Notes: generated by a model not told the origin, from the sequence alone. 64,000 nt of DNA from Lepidodermella squamata (GCA_047495785.1 JBLDXI010000001.1:2170001-2234000); one strand, 5' to 3'; shown: positions 34,559 through 63,000, counted from the first letter of the stretch. Numbers and translations: made by a program.

Positions 34559-35062
34559 TCAAGTCTCATGGGAAGTTTTCACGTGACGAGCCAGGCTTCG
34601 AGGATGAACATAAGCTCTGCCACAAATGTCACAAGCGTACTTCCCGGAATCAGCCTCATCATCAGAGTTTGAAGATTCGACGACTTTCCGATTTTTCGAC
34701 TCATTTCCGCCGGTTTTTCCTGATTTCTTCTCCGTTTTATCCGATGAAAAAAACGCGCTGTAGTCGGGCTGCTCGCCAGGTACGTAAAAGTACGCGCCGT
34801 CCGAAACAATGTCACTGTCGACAGCTTTTTCTTCATGGTTCGATGATGAATCTTCCGAAGTCGAGTTCCCATTTTCGATAGGTTCTGGGGGCGGAGGCGA
34901 TTCTTCTTCGTGGAATTCGGACGAAACAATGTCATGGATAAAGGTCACATTAGCCAGGCACAGCTTCAAATACGCGGCTGAGGGTTCGCGAACAGGCGCT
35001 TTCAGAAGTTCAACAAGGGAACTGGAAACATGCCTTACAAGTGCCAAGTCATTTTCATCCAT
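34559..35062 (-). CDS. Type-A N-terminal domain + 1 C2H2 finger
   Basis: LVELLKAPVREPSAAYLKLCLANVTFIHDIV, acidic linker, then YACDICGRAYVHPRSLARHVKTSH. Confidence 0.8.
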   Translation of the reverse strand: MDENDLALVRHVSSSLVELLKAPVREPSAAYLKLCLANVTFIHDIVSSEFHEEESPPPPEPIENGNSTSEDSSSNHEEKAVDSDIVSDGAYFYVPGEQPDYSAFFSSDKTEKKSGKTGGNESKNRKVVESSNSDDEADSGKYACDICGRAYVHPRSLARHVKTSHET

Positions 35063-35164
35063 TTTCAAATTTTGAAGTTAAAAATTCTAAAAAATTAAGA
35101 AATTAATTGGATTTATAGGCCATAAAATTGAACGAAAATGTGAAACTATAAAAAGTTCGGAAAG

Positions 35165-35665
35165 TCAAAAGGTTCCATGCGCATTTCTCACGTGGCGGTT
35201 CAGGTCGGAAGGGCCGCGGTACGCTTTTTCACACTGATCACAAGAAAACTGAGGCGCCCCGTGGGATCGAAGGTGCACTTTCAGGCTCTTTCCTCCGCGC
35301 GTTGGAACATAGCCACAAATTTCGCACGACTTCGGGCTGGGTTTCGGTTCCTCGAGATCGGGAGTTTCTTCTGTTTCTTCAACCTGCGGTTTATTTTGAT
35401 CTCCTACAATGTCGATTTCCACATCAGAGTAAGAATAGCGAGGCATTTTAGCCTGAGGTTGAGCTGCGATTTCTAGGACTCGAGGTTCGTCGGCTTCATC
35501 GGAATCTTTTGGGTGATAATTAGCTTCGACCAATTCGTGAATGAAGGTCACATTTGCGAGGCAAAGTTTCAAGAAAGCAGCCGAAGGTTCCCGAATTCGT
35601 GATTTTAAAAGTTTAACCAAAGCCCCTGCGGCGTTAGCTATCAAACTAGCTTCGATCGGATCCAT
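35165..35665 (-). CDS. Type-A N-terminal domain + 2 C2H2 fingers
   Basis: LVKLLKSRIREPSAAFLKLCLANVTFIHELV followed by two fingers. Confidence 0.8.
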   Translation of the reverse strand: MDPIEASLIANAAGALVKLLKSRIREPSAAFLKLCLANVTFIHELVEANYHPKDSDEADEPRVLEIAAQPQAKMPRYSYSDVEIDIVGDQNKPQVEETEETPDLEEPKPSPKSCEICGYVPTRGGKSLKVHLRSHGAPQFSCDQCEKAYRGPSDLNRHVRNAHGTF

Positions 35666-35765
35666 TATTCATTAATATAGAAACTATGTATTATCAATAA
35701 AAATCTCAAATCCTAAAACAGTTTTTCATTTCAGCTGAAAAATTGCGATTCCGTAAATTCTACGT

Positions 35766-36052
35766 TCAATGTTTTCGTTTCATGTGGGCGTAGAGATGGT
35801 CGGATCTCGTGTAGGACGACTCGCACAAGTTACATCTGAACATTTTCGTAGCAGAATGAACCGATATTCGATGACGATTCATCTTGGAGCTGTCGCAGAA
35901 ATTTTGCAGACATATCGGGCACGTTTTGGGTGATATCGTGGGAGCAGGTTCGAAGTTGTACGAACTTGAAGATGAGATTTGAATAGACTGATCTAACTTT
36001 CGCAACGCTTCAACTATTTTCGATGGAACATTCGCCTCGTCGCGGAAAACTT
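35766..36052 (-). CDS. Last exon of a type-B-like 2-finger C2H2 gene; 5' exons uncertain
   Basis: NVPSKIVEALRKLDQSIQI..SYNFEPAPTISPKTCPIC, matching the SYSF..PNTCPIC motif of neighbouring genes. Confidence 0.65.
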
Positions 36053-36542
36053 CTAAAAATAATCATAAAATAAATCTAATATCTAATAATTACTTAATAA
36101 GCTCAATTATTCCATATTTCAAGGTACGTTTCTGGAAATCTGAAAATCGACCATTTTTACGAATTTTCCAGGTATTTCCTGGCTGGTAACGAAATTTCGA
36201 AGCAGTTACAGTACCTAGTATCAAATTTTTCGCGTCCACACAAAGACTAGCTGCATTGGATGCCCCTGCGCCTGAAACAAAAACCATAACATTCAAGGCT
36301 AAGATTCATATTAAATTTACCGGAAGTCATGGATCGAAATTCTCGGACTAGTGTTATTAAAGACCCTAAAAAGTGTTGAACCAATCTGTTAGGAGAAATT
36401 CAATTAAAAAACTGAAATTGTGACTCGTGAAATCACTAGGCCACAGGAATACTCGAAAATATAACGAAAAATATCGCCCATATACAGTGTTTCCTGCATT
36501 AGGGCGTGAACTATTTTGTTTCACTGTGAGATTCAATGCTCC

Positions 36543-36857
36543 TCAGGGGCTGCTAGATTGCTGCTGCCTTTTCTGCGACTTTTTCGATTTCGTCGCTAGA
36601 ACCTGAAAGATGATGATGATTACTAAAAATGACCCTGGAACCTTGACCATCTATACCTGATCGCGAGGGAAATCATCCTGGTCCATTTCATGCGGCTCGA
36701 GACCAGATTCACTGGACGTGGCCAAATCTTGAATGAAAGTAGCATGGGCGAGGCACAAGTTCATGAAAGCCGCAGAATGCTTAGGAACGGGCGATTTCAG
36801 AAGGCCGATAAGTGCCTTAGAAACACTCAAAATAAGCTCGACATTCTCCTGATCCAT
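36543..36857 (-). CDS. Type-A domain gene apparently without a zinc finger
   Basis: LIGLLKSPVPKHSAAFMNLCLAHATFIQDL. A predicted splice (intron ~36603-36656) leads to VLATKSKKSQKRQQQSSSP*. Confidence 0.55.
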
Positions 36858-36964
36858 TGCGAAAAAATCCTCCTTAAAAATTAGCTAAATTCTGAAAAAA
36901 TCAAACAAGTAAGGTAGATTTCGAAATGTATTCGATATAATTTTTCACGAACTGAGCTTCCTCA

Positions 36965-37451
36965 CTAAGTCCCGTGTACATCAATTTCGTGGCGCCTAAG
37001 ATTATCAGCTCGGTTGTAAGATGAAGAGCACAAACTGCACTTGAAATGTTTCGAATTCGCCATGTGCATAGTCGTTTGATGCCGCAGCAGGTTATATTTC
37101 GAGTGGCAACTTACAAGACATATCGGACAGGTATTCGGCTCCAAATTAGGCCCAGCAGCGAATGAATAAGGTTCTGCTACTGCCGGTATAACATTCGAAT
37201 TTCCGATCATTTTTTGAATTTCCAACACCCTGCCGAGAGACTTCAACATTTCATTCTTTACTAGTTGCGGCAGAACTTGGCCTATATCAAATAAAATAAT
37301 TTAAAACCGGTCGGAAATTTCGCAAAACCCACTTGAAATTTGCTGCCCGATTTTTAAACACAGCTCTTCCGCTTCGATTAGTAATGCACCTGTATCTTTC
37401 GAGCTATAACTTTCAAAATTGGCTGGAAATTGCCGAGTTACCGTGATTCAT
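36965..37451 (-). CDS. Type-B N-terminal domain + 2 C2H2 fingers, three exons
   Basis: MNH|GALLIEAEELCLKIGQQIS|..LPQLVKNEMLKSLGRVLEIQKMI..PNTCPIC. Confidence 0.7.
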
Positions 37452-37513
37452 TCAATCGACTAGACCGGTTAAGTGACGAAAAATCAATTATCCCTAAAAC
37501 CGATATCTTTCGA

Positions 37514-37977
37514 TTAATATTCATCTTTAATCGCCTTCAAGCTCCCATGAACGCCATGGACATTTCGCTCGTGACGCATCACAGAGTCTTTACGGGTGAA
37601 ACTTGCTGAACACGAGTTGCATTTATAATTTTTCGACCTAGCGGCGTGAACAGTCTCTTGATGCCGCCCCATCGTCGATTTGTCTTTGAAGGCTACCAAG
37701 CAAATCGGGCAAGTATTCGGCGCAAGGTTGGGCCCAGAATCGAATGAGTACGATGTGCTGGCTGATTTGTTCGAATTCGAAATTTTAAGATATACCAGGC
37801 ACAAATTGTCGATTTCTGAAATAACAGCAGCTTTCTCGGCAGGGGAAATAGTCTTGCAATCTAAGGACAATTATTTCGACGGATTTGTTCCTTCTAGACT
37901 GAATTACCTTCCAACTTCTGAATGACTCGCCGATAGACCTTGTCAGCCTCATTCAGCAATTGCTCCGAAGTCGACAT
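37514..37977 (-). CDS. Type-B-like N-terminal domain + 2 C2H2 fingers, two exons
   Basis: MSTSEQLLNEADKVYRRVIQKLE|DCKTISPAEKAAVISEIDNLC..PNTCPIC. Confidence 0.7.
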
Positions 37978-38030
37978 AATTTACGGAAACTAAGCTTGAA
38001 AAATTACAGCAAACATATTTTCCAAGAAAT

Positions 38031-38466
38031 TCAATTTTTTATCAAATTATCAGCCGGGTGTTTTTCGAATTTGTGAGCTTCGAATTCATCGAACCGCGAG
38101 AAAGAAGTGGCACAAGTCGAGCACTCAAATTGCATCGTAAGGTTGTCATTATGAAACTTTGCAGCATGCTGATGTAAGCCTGACTCGCTGCGGAATTTTC
38201 TCCCACAAATCGGACAAATCTGGAAATAAACACGTCTCGTCGCCGATTTAGTTTTTAGCATGGTTAATATTTCTGAAATTCTTTCAATGCAGGCTAGAGC
38301 TCTGATGGCAGATTCTGGTAGTTGGGCTGCATTCGCATCGTAACAGATAGCTGGAAAAATCCGACTGATTAAAAACTTCAAAGGACCGATTCATACCATA
38401 AATCTGGGCGCTGGTGAGCTTACAATGAAAGTAAGCTTCTTTTCTCAATTTGGCTGAAAATTGCAT
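38031..38466 (-). CDS. Type-B domain + 2 C2H2 fingers; start uncertain
   Basis: AKLRKEAYFHCKLTSAQIY|AICYDANAAQLPESAIRALACIERISEIL. Confidence 0.7.
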
Positions 38467-38588
38467 GTCAGAGCATTACTTAGTTGAATCCAACAAAAAT
38501 AAAATACAAACCAGATTCCATACAGAAGTATATCAGTGACTAGTTAACAAGATGCATCCTAAAAAATGGCGAAATTTGATCTTAAGAT

Positions 38589-39087
38589 TCATTCAGGCTT
38601 GGGCAATCCGTCATTTCCTGGTCTATCATGAGACAAAGCGTAGTGATCTTTCAGGTCATATTTTCTGGCGTAAGATCGTTGACAGATTGTGCAGATATAA
38701 CGGGGTCTAACAGAGTGGACTGCGAATTCATGCCGATGCAACATATTCTTGTTTGAGAAAGCTTTTCCACAAAGAGGGCAGATTGTTGCCGAGGCAGCTT
38801 CGCTTTCCGCAACTTTGGAAAAAGCCGTCATAATTTTCTTGATTTTTTCGATCGAGGCGATAGCCGACAGGCCGGATTCTGGGATATCCGATAAACGCAC
38901 ATCGATACAGATTGCTATTAAAAATAGAAGCCTGAACAGCAGCGAAAATAAGGAATAAATTGATACCATGAATTTGAGAATTGGCGACTTCGCAAAGAGC
39001 CCCAGCTTCTTTGATCAGCTTAGCTGAAATTCGAGAACATCTACCACAAATAATCTTCGATATCATATCACACCTACCTCTTCTCAT
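38589..39087 (-). CDS. Type-B domain + 2 C2H2 fingers, three exons
   Basis: MRR|AKLIKEAGALCEVANSQIH|AICIDVRLSDIPESGLSAIASIEKIKKIM. Confidence 0.75.
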
Positions 39088-39761: not shown

Positions 39762-40612
39762 TCAGTGTGCTTTCATATGCTTGCTCAGACTTTCCTTGCG
39801 GCTATAAACTTTGGGGCACAGTTTACATTCCCACTTGACATTTTCATGCTTTGCCAGCTCATGAGCTTTAGTGGTGGAACTCTAGGTGAAAGATTTGCCG
39901 CAAGTCAAGCACGGGAATCTCAAAGATTGATGCACTCGCTTGTCGTGTTGATTCAAGCTGACTCGATTTCCAAACTTTAACGGACATTTCATGCATTCGA
40001 CGTTTCTGCCATGAAGGACATTTACATGTCTCTTCCAGCCATCTAACGAGGTGTAGATTTTGGAGCAATATTCACACTGCTGCGAAATCGTGGGGCGATG
40101 ATTTTGGGACATGTGATAGTAAAGGTATCTTGAGCAACGTAATTTGATGTGACATACAGGGCATTCCTTTGAACCATCCTTGCCAACGTGAACTGATTCC
40201 ATATGAACCTTCAAAGCGCGCCTATCGAAGCATTCCAGACCGCACATGGCACATCGATGACCGTGAAAGCTGGAATTCTTTTCATGTGAAAACCGGCAGA
40301 TAAATTATAAGGAAAACATCTCAACTCACGGCAAAGCTTCTCATGGTAATGAAGTCTCCCTGGCGTCAAAAAAGTATTGGGACATAGGGCGCATTGGAAG
40401 ATGGGCGACTCGTTGTGACAATGCACGTGTTCTTGCAGATAGCTGACTGAACTCAACAGCTTAGCGCAAAATGGGCAGGTGCGGCTGTCAAGCGAGGCAT
40501 CCTCGTGTGAATATTTCTTCTTCCCTGAGACGCGAGAAATACGAAGCAAACGTATTTAACAATTTTCGAAAAAATTTCAATTACCAGGCCCCTTCGAGTC
40601 TTCCATGGCCAT
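39762..40612 (-). pseudogene. Multi-ZF gene (HRPTISQQCE family), probably disabled
   Basis: In-frame TAG at 39882-39884 where paralogs have TCG, and the intron-2 acceptor reads ttttcac instead of the ttttcag of paralogs (~40286). Confidence 0.7.
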
Positions 40613-40709
40613 TTTGCGAAAAAATTTCAGCTTCACTATATTATACTATAATGGGCAACTAGAAGAGTAATTAAAATCTACGCGAAATACTACCGTCATT
40701 TGGGTCATT

Positions 40710-41095
40710 GGGGCTATTCGGACGAATGTTCATGCAAACAGGAGAATGAGCATGGCTCAAAAACTACCCGGGCGTTGGCAATGAAATTTTGCACAGAGTT
40801 AGGTGAAAAGACGCCTACCCTAAAACACGCATACCCTACACACATACCCTAAAAATTTCATGGCCTGAGAGTAAGTGGTTGTGAAGATATGAGCTTACCT
40901 TTCAGGTGTTTCAGGTGTTTCAGTTTAACTCAGTTTAAGCACTGTTCTTCGTTGAATTACCTGGACCCGAAGAGAATTTTGCTAGACCTGCGCCCAATTT
41001 TTTCTGAATCTACATACGCTCGGGCACCCATGAAAATTGAAAACGTCCCGACCCGACTCATACTTTTTTCTAATTAATTGCGTCCGAATAGCCCC
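40710..41095. mobile_element. MITE with 15-bp TIR GGGGCTATTCGGACG
   Basis: ggggctattcggacg ... cgtccgaatagcccc; no clear TSD. Confidence 0.7.
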
Positions 41096-41113
41096 ATCAA
41101 CAAGTGAACTTGA

Positions 41114-41516
41114 GGGGCTATTCGGTCTGCCCTTTGAATATGCCAATGAACTACGCTGTTCAAACGTTCCTTGCTGATTAAAGCGGACTTCAATTTCATT
41201 TACATTTCAATTTTTGAAAAAGCTGGAAATGCTGGAAAAGACTAATTTACTGCGGTGTCACACGACATTGCCAATTGATTAAATACGACTATAATTGACA
41301 AATAATTCAACTAAAAATCAGTGCGATATATTGCTTAAATCCTTGTGCATAAAAATAATTCGAAAATTTTGCGGAAAAATTGTTCCGCGGCGTGGACTCG
41401 AACCCTCGTTTCGTACTTAGTTATGCTCTCTAGAAGCACATCCAAAGCCACTCGACCACTGAACACAACATATCAGTAATTTTTGAATTGAATATTTATG
41501 TATCATTAATAGCCCC
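41114..41516. mobile_element. Second GGGGCTATT...AATAGCCCC element, carrying a tRNA-like sequence
   Basis: Nine-bp terminal inverted match shared with 40710-41095, but an unrelated interior. Confidence 0.5.
41381..41466 (-). pseudogene. tRNA-like sequence (Leu/Ser type II), pseudo-tRNA or SINE head
   Basis: Minus strand has box A tggtcgagtgg, a gtgct-tctagag-agcat arm, a long variable region, box B ggttcgagtcc and a T5 run downstream. The acceptor stem pairs poorly. Confidence 0.6.
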
Positions 41517-41765
41517 ATCAGGATTCCAAAATTATGACCATCTGTGGTAATCCTGGTTCCATTGGAATCAGGACCTTATGAAACGTGTAAAAATGCAAAA
41601 AAAATCAGGAGGTAATTTTTTTCGCCGTCTGGATAGCCCCAACTGACGGTGCCAAAAAGGCTCTATTTGTAAATTTACTAATAATATCTCGCACGCAATC
41701 GGCTTAAAATCAGCGTATTCACTATTCACTATGCCCGACCTTTGCTGTGGCAAGAAAAGTGCAAG

Positions 41766-42082
41766 CAGAGTTGTCCTCGGGTCTGAAATTTTGGACCCGA
41801 TCCGAACCGGACTTCGGAATCCAAAACCCGGATCCGATCCGATCCGATCCGAGGTCAAACCAGGCGCTTTTTCTGGGGGTTTTCCTGGTCGGATAAGTTA
41901 CTTATTCAGGAAATTTTCACCGAAACCTCGCGGAAATAGGGTTGTCTTCAATTTTCCTGGTGATAAGTGACATTTAAGACATAGAATTTTACGGTAATGT
42001 GAGTTTTCAGCTGTGCCTTGCTTACACGTACTCAATGTCGGGTCGACGGGGAAGACCCGGATCCGACCCGGGGACAACTCTG
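41766..42082. mobile_element. hAT-type MITE
   Basis: TIRs cagagttgtcctcgggtc and gacccggggacaactctg. Eight-bp TSD agtgcaag at 41758-41765 and 42083-42090. Subterminal (gatcc)n repeats. Confidence 0.9.
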
Positions 42083-42368
42083 AGTGCAAGACAAGTACAA
42101 CGCTAACGTTGAGGTTGACGGCTTATGATAGGCTCCTCATCTCCAAAAATGCGATCCTAGTTCTCATTGACGTGAGAATTCCAGACCAGGGTCCGGAATA
42201 TTATTATAGAGTGAAATTCAGTATTAATTGGAGGCATTGACAAAATCGTGCACGAGGAGAAGAGTGAGGCTTCAACATAATTTGTTTTATCAGATAATAT
42301 TATATACTCAGCCATATAACAATTCCGACCGGGAAAACAAGGCTATCATCAGTTCAACAAGTATCGAT

Positions 42369-43228
42369 TCAGTGTGCTTTCATAATATGCTTGCTCAGAC
42401 TTCCATTGTGGTTATAAACTTTAGGGCACAGTGTACATTTCCATTTGACATTTTCGTGATTGACCAGCTCGTGAACTTTAGCTGCATAACTCGAGGAGAA
42501 CGATTTTTCGCAATTCAAGCACGGAAATCTCAAAGATTGATGCACTAGCCTGTCGTGGTGGTTCAAATTGGATCGATTTCGGTAAGTTGCAGAACATTTC
42601 ACGCATTCGAGGCCCTGCCCATGCACGGCTATGGCATGACTCTTCAAGCTGATCAACGAGATGAATATTTTATAGCAATTTTCACATTGCTGCGAAATCG
42701 TGGGGCGGTGACATCGCGTCATGTGATAGATAAGGTATCTTGAGCAACTCATTTTCTTGTGGCAGACAGGGCAGTCTCTCGAATCGTCCTTGCCGGCGTG
42801 AACTGACTTGAGATGCACAGCCAAAGTGTGCTTATCGACGAATTCCAGAACGCACATGGAACAGAAATATTCAGATTGATAACCTTGAATCCTGAAAGCC
42901 TTTATACCTGAAAATAGGCAGATAAATCATACGGCAAAAGATCTCAACTCACGGCAACGCTTCTCGTGGCAATCAAGTCTTCTTTGCGTGACAAAGGTTT
43001 TGGGACATAGGGCGCATTTGAAGCTGGTCGATTCGTCGTGCATATGTGCGTGTTCTCGCAGATAGTGGAATGAACTCAACACCTTAGCGCAAATTGGGCA
43101 CGTGCGGCTGTCCTGGTGTGATTTCTTCTTCTTCTCTAGGGCTCAAAAAACAAGAAGCATACGTGTATGAAAGTTCCGAATAGTTTCCAATTACCAGGTT
43201 TCCTCGATTTAGAGCCTTCCACGGCCAT
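42369..43228 (-). CDS. Multi-C2H2 ZF protein (HRPTISQQCE family, about 8 fingers, three exons)
   Basis: MAVEGSKSRKP first exon, DSRTCPIC exon and a six-finger terminal exon. Confidence 0.8.
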
Positions 43229-43765
43229 GTTGAGATACACGTTCAGCTTCGTCACTATATTTTACTATAAAGGGCGACTAAAGGAGTAATTAAAATCTAT
43301 AGAAGCTACGCGAAATACCACCAAAAGACTCGTTGTAATTTATTACGATTACGATTACGATTCCGACAGAGGTATTATCAATTTATTAATAATCAGCGTA
43401 AATTCACTATGAACGACCTTTGTTGTAGCCAGACAGAAGTATAACACTAAACACTGACGTTGAGCTGGACGGCTTATTATTAGGTACCAAGCTTGCACAT
43501 CCGTTAGACCTGTCCCTTCTATCATCTCCGATAATGCGATATTAGTTCTCATCTACATGAGAATTCCAGACCCGGGTCTGGAATTTTATCGCAGGGTGTA
43601 ATTCAGTATTAATTGGATGCGGTGTCCAAATCGCGCACTGAGATAACACAGTGAGGCTTCAACATGATTTGTAATATCAGGTAATATCTATCCCGCCAGT
43701 TAACGATGTCGACCGAGAAAACAAGGCTAACATCAGTTCAACAATTTTCGATTCAGGGAGCTTGC

Positions 43766-44490
43766 TCATGCTTTCACGTGTGATTTCACGTGCTTGCGCA
43801 GACGTTCGGGGCAGTTATAAAATTCAGGGCACAATTTACATTTCCACTTGACATTGTCGTGCATCGCTAGCTCATGGACTTTAGCTTTGTGACTCGAGAA
43901 GAACGATTTGTCGCAATTCAAGCACGAAAAGCTCACTGATTAATGCACTCGCCTGTCGTGGTGTTTCAAGGAGGATCGATCTCGAAAAGTTGCAGAACAT
44001 TTCGCGCATCTGTGTTCTCGTTCATGCACGATTCTCATGTGTCTCTTCCAGCTTTCCAACGAGGTGAAAACTTTACAACAATATTCACATTGCTGCGAAA
44101 CAATGGGACGATGATTTATGGACAAGTGAAGGGTAAGGTATCTTGAGCAACGAAGTGTTAGGTGACATACAGGGCATTCTTTTAAATCTTCCTTGCCGGC
44201 GTGAACTGATTAGGTGAACTGATAAGGGACACAAACATTCAGATCGATACCCGTGAATCCAGAAAGCCTTTATACCTAAAAACGGGTAGATGAAACATAG
44301 GCCAAAGTATCTCAACTTACGACAACGCCTCTAATGGTCTTCAAATCTCCTTTTTGTAGGAAGTGTCTTCGGACATAAATCGCATTTGAAGCTAGGCGAT
44401 TATTCGTCTTGCATATGTCGAAGATAGATGCAGAAATGTATGCCTTGGCACAAATTGGACAAACGTGGATATCAAGCGCGAGAACCTGAA
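43766..44490 (-). pseudogene. Multi-ZF pseudogene
   Basis: Homologous to neighbours, with a premature TAA at ~43940, a deletion near 44220 and a degenerate 5' part. Confidence 0.7.
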
Positions 44491-44835
44491 TTATTCGTTG
44501 CTAATACCAAGAAATCATCTTGATATTTGAAGCATCTTCTTTAGATACCAGCATTATTCAAGACAATGGCAGCCAGTTGAAAGATGAACTACGAATTTAG
44601 AAACCAATTATCCACTCTAAATACAAATTTCGTTTAAAATTTAAAATAACTCCAATTTGTCGATGAGTCAGTGAAATGGAAAAGGCAAATAACAGAAAAA
44701 GCAACGAGCACACAAGTATTTTCACCGCAGTTCACGTTGTTTCTTCATGAAAAACTATGGGCCGTAGATTAGACTGCGTAGACTGGGAGGTTGAAAATGC
44801 ACAATTAATATCGAGTTTCTGTACATTTTGACCTA

Positions 44836-45294
44836 CCGTAAATACCGAATTACTAGGCATCACCTAAATTTAAGGCAGGACCGGAATTGAGGGCACAGGT
44901 CCGAGGTCAATTGAAATAATATAAGGCAGAACCGAAATATAAGGCACGTGCCTCTTATTCCGGCTTGAGTGAGCGTCAGCTGTGCAAATGGAAGAAGCTT
45001 AATCTCGCGCACTTGATAGAGCGTAAGTAGTACTTAATCCACCTGTGAGGAATTTAATCCCTTGTTTACACACAGTCGCTAGCAGCAAAGGAGGTAAAGA
45101 ACGCAGGCGCCTCCCAGGTGCGGGTCGATGAGGTTGAAATTATAACTGGTGATGATGATGAATGAATTTCTCGTGCTCGGTAAAAATAAATATAAGGCAG
45201 ACCCGAAATAAAAGGCAGACCCGTTTTACAAGGCAGGACTTTTGGGGCATTTGAAATTATTATAAGGCACTCTCTTATAATTCGGTATTTACGG
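44836..45294. mobile_element. Tc2/pogo-like MITE with TA TSD
   Basis: TA-ccgtaaataccgaatta ... taattcggtatttacgg-TA, with many internal taaggca motifs. Confidence 0.85.
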
Positions 45295-45575
45295 TATTCC
45301 CTTCACTCCAGCTTTAAAATTGAGAACATTGAAAATGGTGAATGGCTGCTTTAATTATTTTGATTTTCTGCGTGCCTTTCATTGCGAAGTGTGATCTTCA
45401 TGACACAATTGAACGAGGCAATTGATTGCCATGTTTTTTCAAATGTTGCCACAAACCTGATAACTAGTGAACATTCCCGGACACAATCTACATTCCCAAC
45501 GGAAATTTTCTGACAGATGTAAGTCTATCATTAGTTCTATCAGACAGTTCTATCATTAGTTCAACAAGGTTCGAT

Positions 45576-46440: not shown

Positions 46441-46490
46441 TTTGAGATACACGTTCAGCTTCACTATATATTACTCTACAATGTGCAACT

Positions 46491-50449: not shown

Positions 50450-50878
50450 ATTGAGAATTTATTCAGCTTAGCCTTCGCAGAAGCTCAAATTTAGTTCAAG
50501 TAAATCTATTTCAATTGGAGAAAGTCGAAAAATCGGGATGATTACTGACAAAAATTCAAGTTTCAATTCTCGACAGCTGGGAATTGTTGCATTTTCTTCA
50601 ATTAATGCCGAATTTTTCACAATACAGCCGAGTCCTTAAACCAGTGAGATTCGTGATGGCAATTTGATTTTATGGGGGATTTTTTCGCATTCATAACTGG
50701 ATCAAATTTCTCTTTCAATCAGGCAAAAATTCAACAATCATTAAAAATAGGAAAATTTGTAATCACCGACAGACATCAAATTAAATTTAGCTGCTTATCA
50801 CTGACCAAAATCTCTAATTCACGCACAATTTTCCCGGTGAGTGAGCTAAGCTCGTATTATAAATTTCGATTTCTTCTA

Positions 50879-53189
50879 ATGGAGTCGGGGATACCTTTGC
50901 AAGTAGGCCAGCTATTCCAGCTCAACGAAACGGTTCAAGGATTGAATCTGGGTGCCATTTTTTCCAAGAGCTCGATCAACATAACGGAGAAGTACACCCT
51001 ATTGGCAGCTGCAATTTTCCTTAACACCTTGTCTTGGGCTAAGAATAAGGGCCGAGATGACGCTTGTTGGCTGCGAAGACCTTACAACATGTCGGCGAGA
51101 TTTATGCTAGGTTGGGAAGACAACGCTTATCTAAGAAGAAATCTAGCCACAGACGGGGTTACGGAGGGCTGCTATGCGATCATGGAGATGACCTACAAAT
51201 GCATATGCACAACCCCTGCGCCCGATAATGAGCTAGGATGTCGAGCGAATGACACAATCAGGCCTTGTATCAGGCTCGAGATTGAGCTGCAAACCCCGAC
51301 GGTGACCAGGAGTAATGAGGCAATAACTTGGCGGGGTTATGCATCGGCCGGTTTGAACATTCTAACATCGTTGGTTACAGTTATTTGTAAGTTTCGAACT
51401 TCGAATCTCACTTAATTTGTTGTCTCTTCAGTAAATAGCGCTGTGATCTACGTTTGGGCGAGGAATCCTCAGCTGCAAACAGTGACTAACACTTTCGTAA
51501 TCAACTTAGTCCCAGCTAACTTGGCACTCGTGGTTTTGACTTTACCCATTAAGGTGGGTTGATTATTCCAGCTTTTATATTTTATAATTCACAGTTTTCA
51601 ATTTCAATCAGGCCTATGGAACTTTGTCGCAATTCGGAGAGTTAAATTGGTTTACAACTGATCCATATTGGATAGCCGACGTGTTTTGCAAAATCTACTC
51701 CATCATACCGACACTTGCGATGATCATTTCAGCAAATATGTTGGCTCTAATAGGTTACGAGAGGTATCAGGCCATTTGCAACCCACTGAATAGCCAGCGC
51801 CAGCTGTCTCGAAAACGGGCTTATAAGCTGATTGCGATTGTATGGCTTTGGTCTCTTGTATCCTGTACCCCAGTCATTGTATACAACGTAAGAACCATTG
51901 CCTTGTAAAAATTATCAAATCATTTTATAAACGGATTTCGTGAACTTTTCCAAGCTCAACTCGGACGATTTATTTAGAAATGGGTCGTCTTCAAGAGGAA
52001 TCGCACTTTTCCATCTTATATCAAATTTTCAATATTTAATTAGTCAAACAAGCATTACATTTTTTCAATTTTCTTCATGATCCCAAAATTATGAAATTAA
52101 AATTATGAAAATTAAAATAAAAAATTTGAGAAAAAGTTCAAATGAATTACAATTAAATTTAGCGTGATGTCCTGCACGCAGCCCATGATTACTTCGGGTA
52201 AAGAGAATAATCAATCATCATTCAGCCAAATTTACAGGTCTTGCTCCGCTGAGAGCTTTGAAAATTTGATTCGAGTCGAATTTAAAAACGAGATACAAGA
52301 ATATGCTGAATGCTGATTCAACTCCGAATTCGACTCCATTTTCCAAAATTTAATGAAGAACTAAAAAAGACGCTAGGTGAAATTTTTTGGTTTTCTGGCT
52401 GTAGGGTATTTTTCTCAGCGGAACTACCGAAGGGTACCAACTTTTCTGCGGGGTGACATTTGATCAGTTCTTGATTGAAAACATCTCAACTCTACATGCC
52501 GTCTATCGCATCACAATCGTGATTTCACAGTTTTTCATACCCGCCATCGTCCTCAGCGTTGTCTACGCCAGAATTCTAATGGTCCTAAGGCTTCGCGTAA
52601 GCATTGATAAGCCTCAATCGGCCAGCGGATCGGGAATTGGTCGCTTTTTGCCAAAAAGACTGTTGCTCGCATCCAAGAAACCAGAGTAAGAATTTCGTAA
52701 TTTTTCTCGTAATTTCCGTGAATTTCTTTCCATAGGCCAACTGCAATGAAGTTGTCTCTAGACGAACGCGAGCGCATTCGTGAGAAAACCGCCCGACTAA
52801 CTCGCCGGGCTACAATGACTTGTTTCTACTGTTTAGCCGCGTTCGTTCTACTCTGGCTGCCGTACGCAGTGGCTGAAGTTATAACTTGTATCAGCTTCTA
52901 CTCTCCAAGATTGATGCTGGGACTTGTTTGGTACACAACGTTTGGCTCTTTCGACACGCTAGGGCTTTACCATTCGATAGCAATGACTTTCTCGTTTTTC
53001 TCGACGCTGATCTATTGCGGTGGAAATCAACAGTGGTTTAGTTTGGTAAAGCAACTCCTTCTATGTAACCGTTCACCGAGCAAGGAAGGCTCACCTATTG
53101 CCGATGTTCGCGAAGTTTCATCCACCTCAACTTCGCATGACCATGTAGCAAACAAATCTTCGAAAGCTTCCAATTTCTCTATTTCATGA
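50879..53189 (+). CDS. Rhodopsin-family (class A) GPCR, neuropeptide-receptor-like, multi-exon
   Basis: LQTVTNTFVINL, FCKIY..GYERYQAICNPL, IVWLWSLVSCTP, FFIPAIVLSVVYARI and FVLLWLPY, plus a long Cys-containing N-terminus. Confidence 0.85.
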
Positions 53190-54686: not shown

Positions 54687-54714
54687 CTTTCAATTTAAAA
54701 AATTATCGATATTT

Positions 54715-55374
54715 TCAGACTTCAAGTTCAGGGTTGAAATGGTTATTGGCCAAATGTCTCTTCATGGCCAACTCATTTCTGAAAGTTTTTCGACAATTCG
54801 GGCGCAGGCATTTCACAGGCGGGCCTCGAGCACCCAAAGCATGAGTCTTCAGATGCTGTCGCCTACCGAAGGGAGAGCTCAACTCTTTCGGACACAGCGT
54901 ACATTTCCACGTGGCGTTGAAATGGAGCCTGTTTTCGTGAACTTTCAAATCGCCGGTTGTACGAAACTTCTGACCACAAGTCATACACTCACAAGTCTTG
55001 AAGTAGTGAGCATACCGCATATGATGAAACAGCAAATGATTAGTCAAATAATAGTTGCTGCACACCGGGCATATAAACTGTTTAGTTTCCGGCTTCGGCT
55101 TGAGACACAAATTGCCGTGGTTCCTTTTAGCAGTCCACGAAGGAAATAACCGCCCACATTTTTCGCACGCTAGGTAAGGGGATGGGCGATGGAAACGCGT
55201 TAGGTGTTGCTGGAGGTACAAAAAACAATTGAATAAATGCGGGCAGACCGGGCATTTCAAAGGTTCAGCTTCCGTGCGATGCATCGCCTTCATGTGAGCG
55301 TTCAAATTCGTTTTACACGTAAATTCCCGTCCGCATTCACCGCATTTAATCAGAACTCTTTTTCTTGCCATCAT
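54715..55374 (-). CDS. Multi-C2H2 ZF protein ending HFNPELEV
   Basis: Paralog of 32394 and 33848. Confidence 0.85.
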   Translation of the reverse strand: MMARKRVLIKCGECGREFTCKTNLNAHMKAMHRTEAEPLKCPVCPHLFNCFLYLQQHLTRFHRPSPYLACEKCGRLFPSWTAKRNHGNLCLKPKPETKQFICPVCSNYYLTNHLLFHHMRYAHYFKTCECMTCGQKFRTTGDLKVHENRLHFNATWKCTLCPKELSSPFGRRQHLKTHALGARGPPVKCLRPNCRKTFRNELAMKRHLANNHFNPELEV

Positions 55375-55949: not shown

Positions 55950-56372
55950 CTATTGGATTTCACGATGAGGACGTCTCATGTGGGCACGTAGATTTTTGTG
56001 GTTACCAAACGACTTCGGGCAGCGATCGCATTTGAAAGGTTTCGAAGTCTCGTCTTCTGAAGCTGCGAAATTTTGAAGCGTTTCTAAGCCGTCATCCTTC
56101 CTTTTCTCATTCGCAATTTCGAAACTTGGCCTCTTAGAGGGAGCCGTTTTATTCATATCACGTTGAACCATTTCTCTGATAAAATCTTTCCAATCATCGT
56201 CCACATCAACGATTTCATCTTGAGGAGGCGCGATCGCTTCGACAAGATCTTGAAGGTAGTTGACTTGAGCGTAGCACATCGCTAAATATGGATTCGTCGA
56301 GGCTTCATTGTGCGTCAAAATGGTTCGGACGAGTAACACAACTGCTTGCTTAATGGCACGAATTTTTTCCAT
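55950..56372 (-). CDS. Type-A domain + 1 C2H2 finger
   Basis: VLLVRTILTHNEASTNPYLAMCYAQVNYLQDLV, then KPFKCDRC..HMRRPH. Confidence 0.8.
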   Translation of the reverse strand: MEKIRAIKQAVVLLVRTILTHNEASTNPYLAMCYAQVNYLQDLVEAIAPPQDEIVDVDDDWKDFIREMVQRDMNKTAPSKRPSFEIANEKRKDDGLETLQNFAASEDETSKPFKCDRCPKSFGNHKNLRAHMRRPHREIQ

Positions 56373-56443
56373 CGAAAAATCGAAATTTTATAAACAAAAG
56401 AGAGTCCTAGAAAAATGAGGTTTTCGAATGGATGTTTTACTGA

Positions 56444-56962
56444 TTAGTGAATAGTTTTCAGAGTTTCAGATGTCTGGAAGAGTTCAGGATGGTAATATTT
56501 ACGGTGATAGCTCCAGCTGATCTTAGAACTGTACGTTCGAGGGCATACCTGACAGCCGTAAGGTTTGACTCGATGAGGTAGTTTTCGATGGTTCCTGAGA
56601 TTGGCCCGGGTAGTGAATGTCTTCCAGCACTGATCACATTGGATGGTTCCCGAAGTATTGGCTCCAGCCGATTTGATAGGCTGAACAGCCGGTACGGTCA
56701 GCAAATCATTAGGATCTATGTTTCTATGCGGAGAATTCACAAATTCGCCCATGTGAGGATGCGGAACGATTTCCTTGGCCAAGTTGCGGGGTGAGCTAGC
56801 TTCGCGAGATATTGAATCAAGGATTTCTTGGAGATAAATCAACTGAGCCCGGCACATGACCAAAAAGGAATTGGTATGAGCTTCATCATGGGTCTCAAAC
56901 AGGCAGACAAGTAATTCCACGGTATGCTGCGCTGCTTTGAGCTGTTTTTCAAATTCCATCAA
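56444..56962 (-). CDS. Type-A domain + 2 C2H2 fingers
   Basis: VELLVCLFETHDEAHTNSFLVMCRAQLIYLQEIL followed by two fingers. Confidence 0.8.
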   Translation of the reverse strand: MMEFEKQLKAAQHTVELLVCLFETHDEAHTNSFLVMCRAQLIYLQEILDSISREASSPRNLAKEIVPHPHMGEFVNSPHRNIDPNDLLTVPAVQPIKSAGANTSGTIQCDQCWKTFTTRANLRNHRKLPHRVKPYGCQVCPRTYSSKISWSYHRKYYHPELFQTSETLKTIH

Positions 56963-57176
56963 GTTTTAGTTGTAATGAGACCTAAAAATAGACAAATCGG
57001 CCGCATCGAACGTGTAGAACTTTACCCATTCGTAACTCAAAAAACTGAAAATGTAATCGAATTAGATCAAGTAACACAGGTTGACCGATTGGACCCGGGA
57101 GAATTTTATGTCTTTTCAGATGATCAGACAGATTGCTTAAGTCTTCGGGCACAATGTGCATTTCCACTTGACAATT

Positions 57177-58177
57177 TCATGCTTCGCCAGCTTGTGATAC
57201 CTCATCCTTACTAGCATGCACTGATCGTATGTGTTTGGTCAAACGCCGTCTAGAGAGGTTGTTCAGACCGCATATCGTACATGGGAATTCAGGCTGACAA
57301 TCCTCAACATCGGCGACGGTTCCGTGTACTTTCATATGCCTCCGAAGACTGCAAGACTGGATATAAACTTTAGGGCACAATGTGCATTTCCACTCGCCTT
57401 GATCGCGCTTCGCCGGGTCATGAAATTTCATATGCTTTTGAAGAGTATTAGGCCAGGTGAAAACTTTAGGGCACAATGTGCATTTCCACTTGACATTTTC
57501 ATGCTTCGCCAGCTCATGATTCTTAGCACCCCAACTGGAGGTGAATGATTTTCCACAAACCAAGCACGGAAATCGCACAGATTGATGTACTTGCATGTCA
57601 TGTGAATACAAGGAACTTTGATTCCGGTAAGTCATTGAGCACTTCATGCATTTCACGTTGCCGCCATGCATTTCTCTCACATGTTTCCTCCAGGCTTTCA
57701 ACGAGTTGAACATTTTACAGCAATTTTCACACGGCTGCGAAGGTGTGGGGCGATGCTTCTGAGTCAAGTGTTGTTGGAGGTATTCTTCGCAACGTAGTTT
57801 GATGTGGCAGACAGGGCATTCTTTTGAATCTTCCCTGCTAGCATGTACCCCTTGAATGTGTCGGGTCAACATCTGTCTATTGGAGGTATTCAAGCCGCAA
57901 ATCGAACAAAGGAACTTAGGCTGATAACCCTCAATATCGCTAGCGATTGTACCTGGGAATCATATGGAGAAATAGTGTAGTAGAGTAAACAACAGTACTT
58001 ACATCGGTTCTGATGTCTCCAAACTTCTGATGGCGTGTAGAAAGACTTATGACATCTCTTGCATTCGAAATGGGGAGATGCGGCGTGTAAATGCACGTGA
58101 TCTCGCTTACTTTCTATTCTCTCGAAAACAGCAGCGCAAATCGGACAGGTCAGGCTATCCAGCGGCTTCACAGCCAT
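57177..58177 (-). CDS. Multi-C2H2 ZF protein with a rearranged 3' end
   Basis: MAVKPLDSLTCPIC exon and a terminal exon with duplicated WKCTLCPKV fingers; an out-of-frame finger remnant follows downstream. Confidence 0.7.
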
Positions 58178-58516
58178 TCAAGCAAAAATGTCAAGCTTCA
58201 AAAATGATTTAACAGGGAAAAATCAGAATTTCAGGCTACTATTCAGTCTAAGTTTACAGCTTCATACAAGGGTTTCAAAGGTGAGCTTACATCATGACCG
58301 AATTGAATTAGCAATCTTCGAAAAATCATTTAATTAGAACAACATTAGAAAATCGTACAAGAAAATTAATTGCCAAGTTCCTTCAAATTATGTCCAAAAC
58401 GTGCCTTTTATCTATTTCTTATTATCCAAAATATTTGAGCATCATCTTCATTCCCAATGGAAATTATCTTTCACTCCATTATTAACGTCGACGAATAAAA
58501 AAAGCTAATAATCAAT

Positions 58517-59491
58517 TTATCTAGGGACGGATCCGTGTACTTTCATATGCCTCCGAAGATTGAAAGACTGGTTATAAACTTTAGGGCACAATGTGCATTT
58601 CCACTCGCCATGATCGCGCTTCATCGGGTGAAATTTCATATGCTTTTGAAGACTATTAGGCCGGGTGAAAACTTTAGGGCACAATGTGCATTTCCACCTG
58701 ACTTTTTCATGCTCCACCAGCTCATGATTCTTAGCCCCCGAACTGGAGGTGAATGATTTTCCACAAACCAAGCACGGAAATCGCACAGATTGATGCACTC
58801 GCATGTCATGTAGATACAAAGAACTTTGGTTGCGGTAAGTCATTGAGCACTTGTTGCATTTCATGCATTTCATGTTGCTGCCATGCACTTCTCTCACATG
58901 TTTCCTCCAGGCTCTCAACGAGGTGAAAATTTTACAGCAATATTCACACTGCTGTGAAGGCAAAGGGCGATGCTTCTGAGCCAAGTGTCGTTGGAGGTAT
59001 TCTTTGCAACGGGATTTGATGTGGCAGACAGGGCATTCCCTTGAATCTTCCATACTAGCATGAACCGCTTGTACGTGTCTGGACAAATATTGTCTAGAGA
59101 AGGCATTCAGACCGCATATTGTACAAAGGAATTCAGGCTGATAACCCTCAACATCGGTGACGAATGCACCTGGGAATCATACGGTGAAATTGTGTAGCAG
59201 AGTAAGCAACATGACTTACATCTGTTCCGATGTCTCCGAACTCCCGATGGCTTGTAGAAAGCCATATGACATCTCTTACATTCGAACTGGGGAGATGCGT
59301 CGTGTAAATGCACGTGATCTCGCTTGGCGTCAATTCTCTTGAAAACAGCGGCACAAATTGGACAGGTCAGGCTATCCAGCGGCTTAGCCCGAGATGAGCC
59401 ATGTTTCCTGTCTTTTACCAGTTAGTCGAATATTTACAGAGGATATATTTTGGGGAGCACAAAGTGACTCACCATCGGGCTTCAAATCCAT
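58517..59491 (-). CDS. Multi-C2H2 ZF protein, recent duplicate of 57177-58177
   Basis: Long stretches of near-identical DNA with 57320-58170. Confidence 0.75.
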
Positions 59492-59845
59492 TCAACACAA
59501 ATCCGTAGATTCGAAAATGCTACGACACCAAAAATAAATGGAAAAATTGAGGCAAATTTTTAGTTCAGCTACACCAGCTTTATACTCAACAGTCAGCTGA
59601 CAACATGACCGAAGTGGATTAGAAAACTTTGAAAAATCCCAGCAAATTGTAAATAAGGGCTATAGGTTACGGTATAGGAATCGAATTAACATTCATTACA
59701 AAACTGAACGAGACAATTCATTGCCATGCTCCTTCCTATAATCGCATGATGAGCTGCTGATCATTTGCGAGCATAATCGACCTTCCCAACGGAAATATTA
59801 TGACAGCCCTCATCAATGGCGACCAATAACAAGTTAATCATCAGT

Positions 59846-60737
59846 TTATCCAGGGAAGATTCCGTGTACTTTCATATGCCTCCGAAAACTGGCAGAGTGA
59901 TTGAAAAATTTAGGGCAAAGGTTGCAATTCCACTTGACATTGTCGTGTTTTGCCAGCTCATGAATCTTAGCGTTTTCACTCGATACGAATAATTTGCCAC
60001 AAGTCAAGCATGAAAATCGCACAGACTGATGCACTCGCTTGTCGTGATGATTCAGTACGATTTGATTTCGAAAATTCAGAGAGCATTTCGTGCATTCGAA
60101 GTCTCTGCCATGCATTCGTCTAACATGTCTACTCAAGGTTTTCAACGAGGAGTAGATTTTACAGCAATATTCACACTGCTGCGAAATCGTGGGGCGATGA
60201 TTTTGGGACATGTGATAGTAAAGGTATCTTGAGCAACGGCATTTCAGGTGGCATACAGGGCATTCTCTTGAATCTTCCTTGCGGGCGTGAACTGATTTCA
60301 GATGCGCAGTCAAATCACGCTTATCGAATAATTCCAGACCGCATATGGGGCACACATATTCAGATAGACAACCTTGAATCCTGAAAGCTTTTTCATCTGA
60401 AAACCGGCAGATAAATCGTATGGTAAATTATCTCAGCTTACGACAACGCTCCACATGGTATTTAAGTCTCCCTTTCGTGAGAAGTGTCTTGGGACATGAA
60501 TCGCATTTGAAACTGGGGGATTCATCGTGAAAATGCAAGGTTTTTGCAGAAAGCGGACTGAACTCAAAACCTTGGCGCAAAATGGGCAGGTGCGGCTGTC
60601 AAGCGACGCATTCTTGTGTGAATTTTTCTTCTTCCCTGAGACTTGAAAAATTCGAAACAAATGTATTTTATCAGTACCAAATATTTTTCAACTACCAGGT
60701 GTCATTAATTGAGCCTTTTTGAGCCTTTCGCGGCCAT
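59846..60737 (-). pseudogene. Multi-ZF gene (HRPTISQQCE family) with an apparent exon-2 frameshift
   Basis: Terminal exon is intact, but exon 2 reads QKPCIFTMNP where paralogs read QEHVHxHDESP (small deletion ~60540). Confidence 0.6.
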
Positions 60738-60985
60738 ATGAAGATACAAGTTTAGCTTCCCCCTATTATATTATGAAAGGCCTCTAAAGGAATAATTTAA
60801 ATTGGTATAGAATCTATTTGAAACTCAACCGAAAAAGAATCTTCTTTTACTTACTTTTACTACTTAATTAACAATACCTCTTTGTGATCGTTGTGATCGT
60901 CAAGGTATTTAAAACAACGTAGTTTGACGTGACAGACAGAGCATTCAATTGAATCTTTCTTGGCGGCATGAACCGATATCTGGTT

Positions 60986-61077
60986 GATGGCCGCAGCCTG
61001 GTGTTGACGCAATGTGATTTCTGCCCAGTGCTTTGAATGTCGAAGTGAAGAAATTCAACCAAGCTCGGGTAAACGGT

Positions 61078-61111
<34 letters not shown>
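60986..61111 (+). rRNA. 28S rRNA fragment (~126 nt) including the R2 / I-PpoI target site; not a functional rRNA gene
   Basis: gtgttgacgcaatgtgatttctgcccagtgc..gtgaagaaattcaa..gggtaaacgg.gggagtaactatgactctcttaaggtagccaaat matches the conserved eukaryotic LSU rRNA core. Confidence 0.9.
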
Positions 61112-61326
61112 TAAGATGAAACGCCGCCTTTTTATTTTTTCAAATTTTTAAATGGATGTGGCTATGTGAACACAGGAAAAGTGTATCGCGCATTGGCTAT
61201 GCGTACACAATATGCGTGACACACAGCCATGGCCTTTTTAAATGATCAAAAAGTATTTTTTGTTAATAATACTAGGTACGGCTCACATGCTCACTCCGTT
61301 CGCATGGTATACTGGATACTGGATAC
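60986..61326 (+). mobile_element. Putative 28S-headed retroposed insertion (SINE-like)
   Basis: 28S head, about 190 nt of unknown body and an (atactgg)x3 tail, interrupting a ZF recognition helix. Confidence 0.5.
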
Positions 61327-61708
61327 TGGAAATTATTGATACGGTTGTGACCATTGCTGATCACATGTCGTACGTCGTACAAATGTACTTCGGTCGATCA
61401 CATTCACCATCGCCTGCACCATGTAATTATAGGGTTTAATGCCGTAGTCAGTTGAAATAATAAAACTCACGATGCCTTACATGGCGCGGAGCTCTTCCGA
61501 GATCGAAATTAAACTGGGAACATTTTTTGCATTCGAACTGGGGAGATGCGTCGTGTAAATGCACGTGATCTCGCTTGTTTGCAGATTTCTTGAAAACAGT
61601 AGCGCAAATCGGACAAGTCAGGCTATCCAGCGGCTTCAAAGCCATTCAAGCAGATATTTCAAGCTTCAAAAATGATATAGCAAGGAAAACATCAGAACTT
61701 CAGGCTAC

Positions 61709-62427
61709 CTAGCACGGAAATTGCACAGATTGATGTACTCGCATGTCATGTAGATACAAAGAACTTTGGTTTCGGTAAGTCATCGAGCACTTCATGCATT
61801 TCACGTCGCCGCCGTGCACTTCTCTCACGTGATCCTTCCAGGTTTTCAACGAGGTAAAGATTTTACAACAACATTCACACTGCTGCGAAATCGTGGGGCG
61901 ATGATATTTGGACATATGATAGCTAAGGTATCTTGCGCAACGCAATTTGACGTGGCAGACAGGGCAGTCTCTTGCATCTCCCTTGCCGGCGTGCACCGAT
62001 TTTAGGTGAGCACAAACTTCGCTTTTACGCGAGCAATGCTTGCCACATATCGTACACAATAAATTTGGTCGATAATCTTCAACATTGCCTGCACCTGTGA
62101 ATTAAACAGTAAATGATGTAGCAAGGAAAAACGTAACCAAAACTGACAGTGCTTCTCATGGTGCCCAGCTCTCCCGAGCTTAGAATACATATGTTCACAT
62201 TTTCCGCATTTGAAGAGGGACGATTCGTCGTGCATGTGTTCCTGCTGACAAGTGACCGATTCGAAGACCCTAGCGCAAACTTGACACGTGCGGCTGCTTA
62301 GCGAGAGAGTCGAATCATCCTTCTCTCCTAGTACCCAGCAAATTACAAACGAAACAGGATATGGAGAAAATGTAGAATATTGCAACTTACTGACTTCATC
62401 AACTCCGAAGCTACTCACCTCAGCCAT
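61709..62427 (-). CDS. Multi-C2H2 ZF gene, 3'-truncated
   Basis: Ends VQFPC* at a junction with sequence duplicated from the upstream region of 58177. Confidence 0.65.
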
Positions 62428-62526
62428 GCAATAGATTCAGCTTTCAGCTTTAGAAAATCATTCAATCTAGAAGAAAACTACAGCTGAAAATTTCAAGAAA
62501 AAAGTTTGCTTTTCTTCGAAAAAAGT

Positions 62527-63000
62527 TCACGATGCAACGCTACGACGTTTCCTCACTATATCAGGATGAAATTTCGAACGATGCAAACTCCAGTGCGATT
62601 GGTGGGCAAATTTTATCGAACAAATAGTACAGATGTAATTTTTCAGCGGCTCAGCTCTCTTGGCCCGCTTTCTATTACGATTCGAACTAATAGGCTTCGC
62701 GCGCTCACGTTTTGTCCCATCCTGACCTTGAAGCGAAAAAACTGGCAGATCGTGAGCTTCTTGCTTGACATGATGGGAAGAAGTTCCAATTTTTTCGGCA
62801 GAGAGACCGGATACAGGAACGATTCCTCGGCTGTTTGACTGAGCAGCTGAGTCAATCAAATCTCGAAGGTACAAGACCTGAGCCTGGCACATCTTTACAA
62901 ACGACGCCAGTTTCTCGTCTTCATTCATTGTGAAAGTGAACAGCAACAGATCGACGTAATCTTTCGCCTTATCGAGTTTGCTCGACAATTCCATCGTCAA
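62527..63000 (-). CDS. Type-A domain + 1 C2H2 finger
   Basis: VDLLLFTFTMNEDEKLASFVKMCQAQVLYLRDLI, a basic NLS-like stretch, then YICTICSIKFAHQSHWSLHRSKFH. Confidence 0.8.
   Translation of the reverse strand: MTMELSSKLDKAKDYVDLLLFTFTMNEDEKLASFVKMCQAQVLYLRDLIDSAAQSNSRGIVPVSGLSAEKIGTSSHHVKQEAHDLPVFSLQGQDGTKRERAKPISSNRNRKRAKRAEPLKNYICTICSIKFAHQSHWSLHRSKFHPDIVRKRRSVAS

Follow-up and report, generated by a model that had tools for sequence, protein, structure and literature searches.

The 64,000-nucleotide (nt) stretch of the Lepidodermella squamata genome considered here (GCA_047495785.1 JBLDXI010000001.1:2170001-2234000; hereafter "the window," meaning the whole stretch, with positions counted from its first letter) carries a dense minus-strand cluster of C2H2 zinc-finger genes from ~32 kb to its end. 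Six genes of this cluster, g1 to g6, open with the same module of ~50 amino acids (aa) at the extreme N terminus of their products, which we call the type A head. A sequence-only reading had described these genes as beginning with a shared two-helix module, followed by a variable disordered linker and only 0 to 2 fingers, and had proposed the module as an analogue of KRAB or ZAD. The shared beginning is confirmed by the open reading frames (ORFs), by a profile hidden Markov model (HMM), and by an AlphaFold2 prediction, and the finger counts are as described (one in g1, g4, and g6, two in g2 and g5, and none in g3). Head, linker, and fingers lie on one exon in five of the six genes. The genes and their parts are listed below, where X1 is a read run indexed merely as "RNA?".

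34559 to 35062, minus strand: g1, a single exon of 167 aa, with head, 91-aa acidic linker (net charge -13), and one C2H2 finger at ~34568-34639 (Pfam zf-C2H2, E 3.4e-5); X1 contigs resembling complementary DNA (cDNA) across 34668-34935
34913 to 35062, minus strand: head of g1 (aa 1-50), HMM score 82.9 bits
35165 to 35665, minus strand: g2, a single exon of 166 aa, with head, acidic linker, and two fingers at ~35177-35326, the first with the spacing C-x2-C-x13-H; X1 contigs at 35287-35626, depth 17-25
35516 to 35665, minus strand: head of g2 (aa 1-50), from the alignment and an HMM score of 77.5 bits
36657 to 36857, minus strand: g3 exon 1, 67 codons, phase 0, with the head at 36708-36857 and an acidic stretch; X1 contigs at 36656-36845
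36603 to 36656, minus strand: g3 intron, 54 nt, GT..AG; X1 joint 36600>36655 skipping 54 nt, CT..AC (cut +2)
36543 to 36602, minus strand: g3 exon 2, a 19-aa basic tail, VLATKSKKSQKRQQQSSSP, and stop
55950 to 56372, minus strand: g4, a single exon of 140 aa, with the head at 56223-56372, acidic linker, and one finger at ~55965-56036
56444 to 56959, minus strand: g5, a single exon of 171 aa, with the head at 56810-56959, linker, and two fingers at ~56489-56644
62527 to 62994, minus strand: g6, a single exon of 155 aa, with the head at 62845-62994, basic linker (net charge +8), and one weak finger at ~62566-62637

The actual start codons are ATGs at 35062 (g1), 35665 (g2), 36857 (g3), 56372 (g4), 56959 (g5), and 62994 (g6). 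The first four are the starts that the sequence-only reading had given; the other two that it gave, 56962 and 63000, are in-frame TTGs just upstream of the ATG. In the stop-to-stop fragments, an in-frame stop lies 1 to 9 codons 5' of the ATG in all six genes, and the head is thus the extreme N terminus of each protein rather than an internal exon. An HMM built from the six heads and run against all six frames of the window (1,613 fragments) returned exactly six matches (77-83 bits, E 1e-23 to 1e-25), with the first match outside the family at E 0.33; by the same model, the ~25 other zinc-finger genes of the window are without a type A head, and no head was found in the window on any other kind of finger array. 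The proposed helix 2 pattern, [YF][LMV]x[LM]CxA[NHQ][VAL]x[FY][IL]x[DE][LI], is correct on the six-head alignment, in which M1, L17, C36, and A38 are the invariant columns, so that the C-x-A core is indeed identical in 6/6. An LxxLL box does not qualify as a family feature: only g1-g3 carry it (LVELL, LVKLL, and LIGLL). A zinc site within the head was ruled out because C36 is its one conserved cysteine, and a signal peptide or mitochondrial presequence was ruled out by eye, given acidic N termini that hold no 20-residue hydrophobic stretch.

The heads form two subfamilies of three, g1-g3 and g4-g6, with an identity of 18-27% between them, and the link between the two was tested with profiles blind to the other subfamily. 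The g1-g3 HMM placed g4 (E 6e-4), g6 (E 7e-3), and g5 (E 0.24) within its top four non-self matches, and the leading non-self matches of the g4-g6 HMM were g2 (E 4e-4), g1 (E 1e-3), and g3 (E 0.07). Compared directly by hhalign, the two subfamilies aligned with a probability of 88.7% (E 2.6e-6), and the 37 aligned columns kept exact register. These profile comparisons confirm that both subfamilies belong to one head family.

Judged by comparison of the paralogs, the head is the best-conserved part of these proteins. Between paralogs, synonymous change has reached saturation (pS 0.61-0.88 over all pairs, 0.67-0.88 within subfamilies), and the non-synonymous differences in the head amount to a pN of 0.30-0.46 within subfamilies; that the head is still recognizable at synonymous saturation indicates that it is under constraint. 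Between g1 and g2, the head core is ~80% identical and the fingers agree at 37% of non-ligand positions, and the linkers cannot be aligned, which bears out the earlier observation that linkers and fingers diverge while the head core holds. Seven of nine variants in two read runs are synonymous. Of the window's 113 fingers, those of g1 find their best match in g2 and vice versa, and the same is true of g4 and g5 (finger 1); this implies that the genes were duplicated whole. By these comparisons, the family expanded by whole-gene tandem duplication into two subfamilies.

The X1 contigs carry SMART cDNA adapter sequence at their loose ends and align to g1-g3 with an identity of 95-100%. They skip 54 nt at one place and 51 nt at another, both with GT..AG-type borders on the genes' strand, and the 54-nt skip is exactly the predicted g3 intron. 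Based on the adapters and the spliced joints over the genes, we take g1-g3 to be transcribed and g3 to be spliced as predicted. The spliced translation of g3 is 86 aa long and fingerless, and the transcription of this fingerless gene indicates that the head is usable without fingers. X1 also contains many "opposite strands" joints ~100 nt apart, between 34711 and 38024, which we take to be library or assembly artifacts (fold-back cDNA). A further read run, X2, yields contigs in two versions ~7% apart (22 differences in 302 bases), at 37052-37352, 36033-36153, and 34796-34847; such pairs indicate two diverged haplotypes or very high heterozygosity. A pyrimidine tract followed by AG stands ~18-50 nt before all six ATGs (35063-35110, 35666-35715, 36858-36900, 56373-56410, 56960-57000, and 62995-63030), with an in-frame stop between tract and ATG, and these putative sites could be acceptors of a 5' untranslated-region intron or of trans-splicing. 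The intergenic gaps from g5 to g4 and from g2 to g1 (71-100 bp) are also compatible with operon-like transcription.

The head is predicted to fold as an antiparallel alpha-helical hairpin. AlphaFold2, given the six-row alignment, models two helices, residues 5-22 and 31-51, and a loop of eight residues between them, with a mean predicted local distance difference test score (pLDDT) of 85 and a predicted template modeling score of 0.62; the numbering here is that of a 61-aa g1 query beginning two codons upstream, at 35068. In the model of full-length g5, residues 1-50 have a pLDDT of 83-95, with helices at 2-23 and 31-55, linker residues 62-128 fall below 50 and are thus predicted to be disordered, and the last finger is confident. 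Together with linkers that defy alignment, this agrees with the variable disordered linker of the sequence-only reading. Columns that are hydrophobic in at least five of the six heads span arcs of ~200 degrees on helix 1 and ~220 degrees on helix 2, and the invariant small residues C36 and A38 lie inside the helix 2 arc. One partner helix buries roughly 100-140 degrees of a helix, and a lone hairpin would thus leave a large greasy surface exposed; the arcs serve here as a sequence-derived proxy for surface beyond what can be buried within the molecule. Helix 2 also keeps polar positions in both subfamilies, N/H/Q at column 39 and D/E at column 45.

Between head and fingers lies a linker of 55-91 aa in the finger-bearing genes, with a net charge of -7 to -13 in g1, g2, and g4 and of +8 in g6, that of g5 being neutral. 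A single I-V dipeptide is present in each of the five linkers, and in four of them it takes the form [DE]IV between acidic flanks. The contexts and approximate positions are as follows:

34790-34810, minus strand: g1, DSDIVSD
35390-35410, minus strand: g2, EIDIVGD
56190-56215, minus strand: g4, DEIVDVDD
56750-56770, minus strand: g5, KEIVPH
62805-62825, minus strand: g6, RGIVPV

Composition-preserving shuffles reached 5/5 in 0.015% of trials (p 1.5e-4, a post hoc figure on paralogs that are not independent), and three of the five sites match the usual pattern of SUMO-interaction motifs. As a lead, the I-V element may be a short linear motif. The fingers themselves score variably against PF00096 (zf-C2H2, cut-off 25.2 bits): g5 (33.6) and g4 (27.8) lie above the cut-off, g2 (24.8) and g1 (24.5) just below it, and g6 well below at 15.0 bits (E 0.034), with no match in g3.

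Searches for relatives of the head were extensive. In Pfam, whole proteins searched at E <= 1 matched zinc-finger families on the finger region and otherwise gave chance matches only (Longin_2 and Adeno_terminal; E >= 0.14), and isolated heads searched at E <= 10 gave a single chance match, Opiods_neuropep; all non-finger matches stood at E 0.076 or weaker. KRAB, SCAN, BTB, and ZAD were matched neither by whole proteins at E <= 1 nor by isolated heads at E <= 10. The dissimilarity to all four that had been asserted from the sequence is therefore upheld at the level of profiles, and the Pfam comparison that had been suggested for the head returned no significant match to a known domain. A profile search of all Protein Data Bank (PDB) sequences gave no matches at E <= 10, and word-index homolog searches with g2 and g5 as queries gave none. 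When 1.84 billion cluster representatives were searched exhaustively with the profile, no true relative emerged, the sole match (P0001, E 8e-4) being a tandem saposin-repeat protein. We regard that match as chance, as its score is summed over three repeats with 10/31 identities each, and saposins are secreted and rich in disulfides, in contrast to a head with one cysteine and an acidic N terminus. A feature search of the ESM Atlas with the g2 and g5 heads gave no usable match, and the 34 pattern matches of the g1-g3 profile in JGI metagenome contigs yielded no confirmed case. By structure, Foldseek found nothing below E 1 in the PDB, VIA-align listed 706 PDB chains at Z >= 5, of which not one reached Z 8, and the ESM Atlas fold search returned mixed bacterial and viral hairpins. 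Our literature search turned up no account of a head of this kind in C2H2 proteins.

How far these negatives reach is set by the length of the module and by the collections. A profile of 50-60 positions needs ~35 bits for significance against 1.84 billion proteins, and the two subfamilies recognize each other at 8-16 bits, so distant relatives would be missed. Exact look-ups of eight intact ORFs of the window (g1, g2, g4, g5, g6, and three neighbors) found 0/8 in the protein collections, which implies that the libraries are without this genome's proteome and that close relatives have probably not been sampled either. "No relatives" thus means none in well-sampled organisms at close range, and the term "lineage-specific," which the sequence-only reading had applied, is limited accordingly. 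Within that scope, the type A head is a genuine orphan module: conserved, transcribed, and, by prediction, structured.

It is instructive to set the head beside the N-terminal modules of other zinc-finger families. ZAD (PF07776) is likewise an N-terminal module, found in clustered, lineage-expanded C2H2 genes and followed by a disordered linker. ZADs are reported to homodimerize and to form heterodimers between close paralogs only (PMC7913770). Such pairing is the behavior proposed for the type A head. In contrast, ZAD is ~80 aa long and has four zinc-binding cysteines, whereas the two-helix type A head has the single invariant C36 with no conserved histidine or other cysteine, and none of the type A proteins matches the zf-AD profile; proteins with a ZAD usually bear long arrays of fingers, and a genome has ~90 or more of them, as against 0-2 fingers and six copies in the window. 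The SCAN domain (PF02023) is a vertebrate-specific, all-helical N-terminal oligomerization domain of C2H2 proteins, ~84 aa and five helices long, which forms a domain-swapped dimer, and fingerless SCAN-only proteins such as SCAND1 can act via heterodimers. The head resembles SCAN in being an all-helical N-terminal module with a fingerless member, g3, analogous to SCAND1; however, SCAN is about twice its size, with five helices compared to two in ~50 aa, and there is neither a sequence nor a profile match. The BTB/POZ domain (PF00651) is an alpha/beta fold of ~120 aa for which the head has no strands, no room, and no profile match. Like the head, KRAB (PF01352) is an N-terminal module of tandemly duplicated C2H2 genes, but as an effector it recruits TRIM28, occupies its own exon(s), and heads long arrays in families of hundreds, whereas the type A head shares a single exon with linker and fingers in five of six genes and matches no KRAB profile, the A-box included. 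The reading as a KRAB/ZAD analogue is partly supported: the N-terminal position and a likely role in interaction fit, but a scale of six genes and a spread by whole-gene duplication, rather than as a mobile domain carried onto diverse finger arrays, do not so far warrant it. Among its nearest structural neighbors are the ROP-like and designed alpha-hairpin dimers (1rpo, 1nkd, and 1ec5) and Tsi2, antiparallel hairpins of ~50-60 residues whose hydrophobic faces are too wide for a monomer and which dimerize into four-helix bundles. The predicted structure and its hairpin neighbors give the head the antiparallel two-helix form of these dimerizers, and the sequence-derived proxy gives it hydrophobic surface in excess of intramolecular burial. 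Nonetheless, these proteins are unrelated, bacterial or designed, and the likeness is one of generic fold (Foldseek E > 1, Z 6.5-7.5, within background).

In total, we posit, with about even confidence, that the head is a handle for protein-protein interaction, probably self-association, in a family of mini zinc-finger proteins that grew by tandem duplication. Given wide hydrophobic arcs on both helices, the simplest solution would be a bundle, formed either by heads among themselves or by one head with a helical partner. In this model, the bundle would be of the four-helix type and could take in two or more heads; each head is joined to 0-2 C2H2 fingers by a mostly acidic and flexible linker with a conserved [DE]-I-V peptide; and head pairing would bring 2-4 fingers together. 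The fingerless g3 product could then cap or titrate partners, acting as a possible competitor. Oligomerization and any regulatory output are what we infer from these features. Several considerations weigh against the model. The case for self-association derives from sequence-derived hydrophobic arcs and a predicted monomer fold, and that fold was predicted from an alignment of six related rows, in a class of structure (amphipathic helices) for which AlphaFold2 confidence is easily obtained. The fold neighbors are a generic alpha-hairpin background, such that structure assigns the head no function. The head copies are known from the window alone, and the transcript evidence covers g1-g3 only, with the RNA nature of X1 being a guess from its index.

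The same wide hydrophobic surfaces would suit a heterologous helical partner, and the head may instead dock onto one common cofactor (a corepressor, coactivator, or chromatin protein), as KRAB does with TRIM28, with the acidic linker and its [DE]IV forming part of the effector. The polar positions kept at columns 39 and 45 of helix 2 in both subfamilies would fit such docking, as would the acidic linkers of g1, g2, and g4, the single IV in all five finger-bearing linkers, and the retention of the head in fingerless g3. However, nothing known to bind cofactors, whether motif or domain, was matched in the Pfam searches, g5 and g6 have linkers that are not acidic, and the I-V statistic carries the caveats given above; we consider docking of this kind rather unlikely. 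We accord much the same low likelihood to the idea that the head is a mere conserved N terminus, or structural cap, of a small paralog family in a young phylum, its domain-like look being a by-product of six whole-gene duplicates. That there are six copies only, that g1 pairs with g2 and g4 with g5 as reciprocal best finger matches among 113, and that the ~25 other zinc-finger genes of the window have no head, such that it has not been shuffled onto other architectures, are all what a cap would predict. A cap would not, in contrast, be expected to be by far the most conserved part of the protein despite synonymous saturation, to persist without fingers in the spliced and transcribed g3, or to carry hydrophobic arcs too wide for a solvent-exposed element.

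Two further explanations appear much weaker. The head could belong to a known class of helical domain that is associated with zinc fingers or mediates dimerization (SCAN, or of the RIIa/Dpy-30 or LisH type), but have diverged so far that sequence methods fail to recognize it at this length. The low power of a 50-aa profile, evident in the 8-16 bits between the subfamilies, leaves room for this idea, and many of the structural neighbors are dimerizing hairpins (ROP, Tsi2, and the designed four-helix bundle 1ec5). We nevertheless think it very improbable: apart from the chance opioid neuropeptide family, isolated heads match nothing in Pfam at E <= 10, no PDB sequence matches at E <= 10, no structural match rises above the generic background, and SCAN has five helices in ~84 aa as opposed to the two predicted here. 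An artifact, in the form of chance ORFs or pseudogenes, is refuted for g1-g3 and is hardly credible overall. Its sole support is the small size of the genes, and against it stand six intact ORFs with saturated synonymous divergence, polymorphism that is mostly synonymous, cDNA-like coverage with a confirmed intron, and a confident fold prediction.

The surroundings of the six genes are eukaryotic and compact (~42% GC, introns of 51-54 nt, and genes spaced 70-100 bp apart) and hold several other gene types. The published Lepidodermella squamata assembly has a GC content of 43% (PMC11660948). Eight more mini zinc-finger genes, at 35766-38969 and 48709-50402, carry a single-helix type B head (PESxxxALxSIxRIxEI) behind micro-exons; the 51-nt skip in X1 confirms an intron of one such gene at ~37281-37331, and the profiles of the type A and type B heads are unrelated (hhalign probability 0.2). 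Both type A groups are flanked by a set of three paralogs, each a single exon encoding 212-219 aa and several C2H2 fingers, whose products end in NHF(A/N)PELE(V/A):

32394 to 33053: NHF(A/N)PELE(V/A) paralog
33848 to 34486: NHF(A/N)PELE(V/A) paralog
54715 to 55374: NHF(A/N)PELE(V/A) paralog

A third gene type of the cluster comprises approximately ten multi-exon genes with five to six fingers, at 39800-48100 and 57100-64000, whose first coding exon has a common form, ...SGKKKxSHxDASLDSRTCPFC. Mid-cluster, on the opposite (plus) strand, ORF translations alone point to a candidate multi-exon gene at 50672-53189 resembling a rhodopsin-type G protein-coupled receptor.

We speculate, as an extension that we hold tentatively and think unlikely to be right, that types A and B are among several unrelated head families invented by this lineage for its mini zinc-finger genes. 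Such a system would be KRAB/ZAD-like yet different in principle: proteins of one or two fingers would gain DNA specificity by head-directed homo- or heterodimerization with subfamily-specific pairing, and fingerless heads of the g3 type would serve as natural dominant negatives. At present, what stands is an orphan module, well documented in a family of six genes, for which we infer a plausible role. The large C2H2 families of vertebrates and insects are organized by N-terminal modules (KRAB, SCAN, BTB, and ZAD) that set partner choice and output, and to our knowledge, almost nothing is known of such modules in small, poorly sampled spiralian phyla. The proteins are tiny, which makes the pairing proposal biochemically easy to examine. 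If it is true, a minimal hairpin of 50 residues, pairing proteins of one or two fingers, would have solved the same problem independently and with unusual simplicity.

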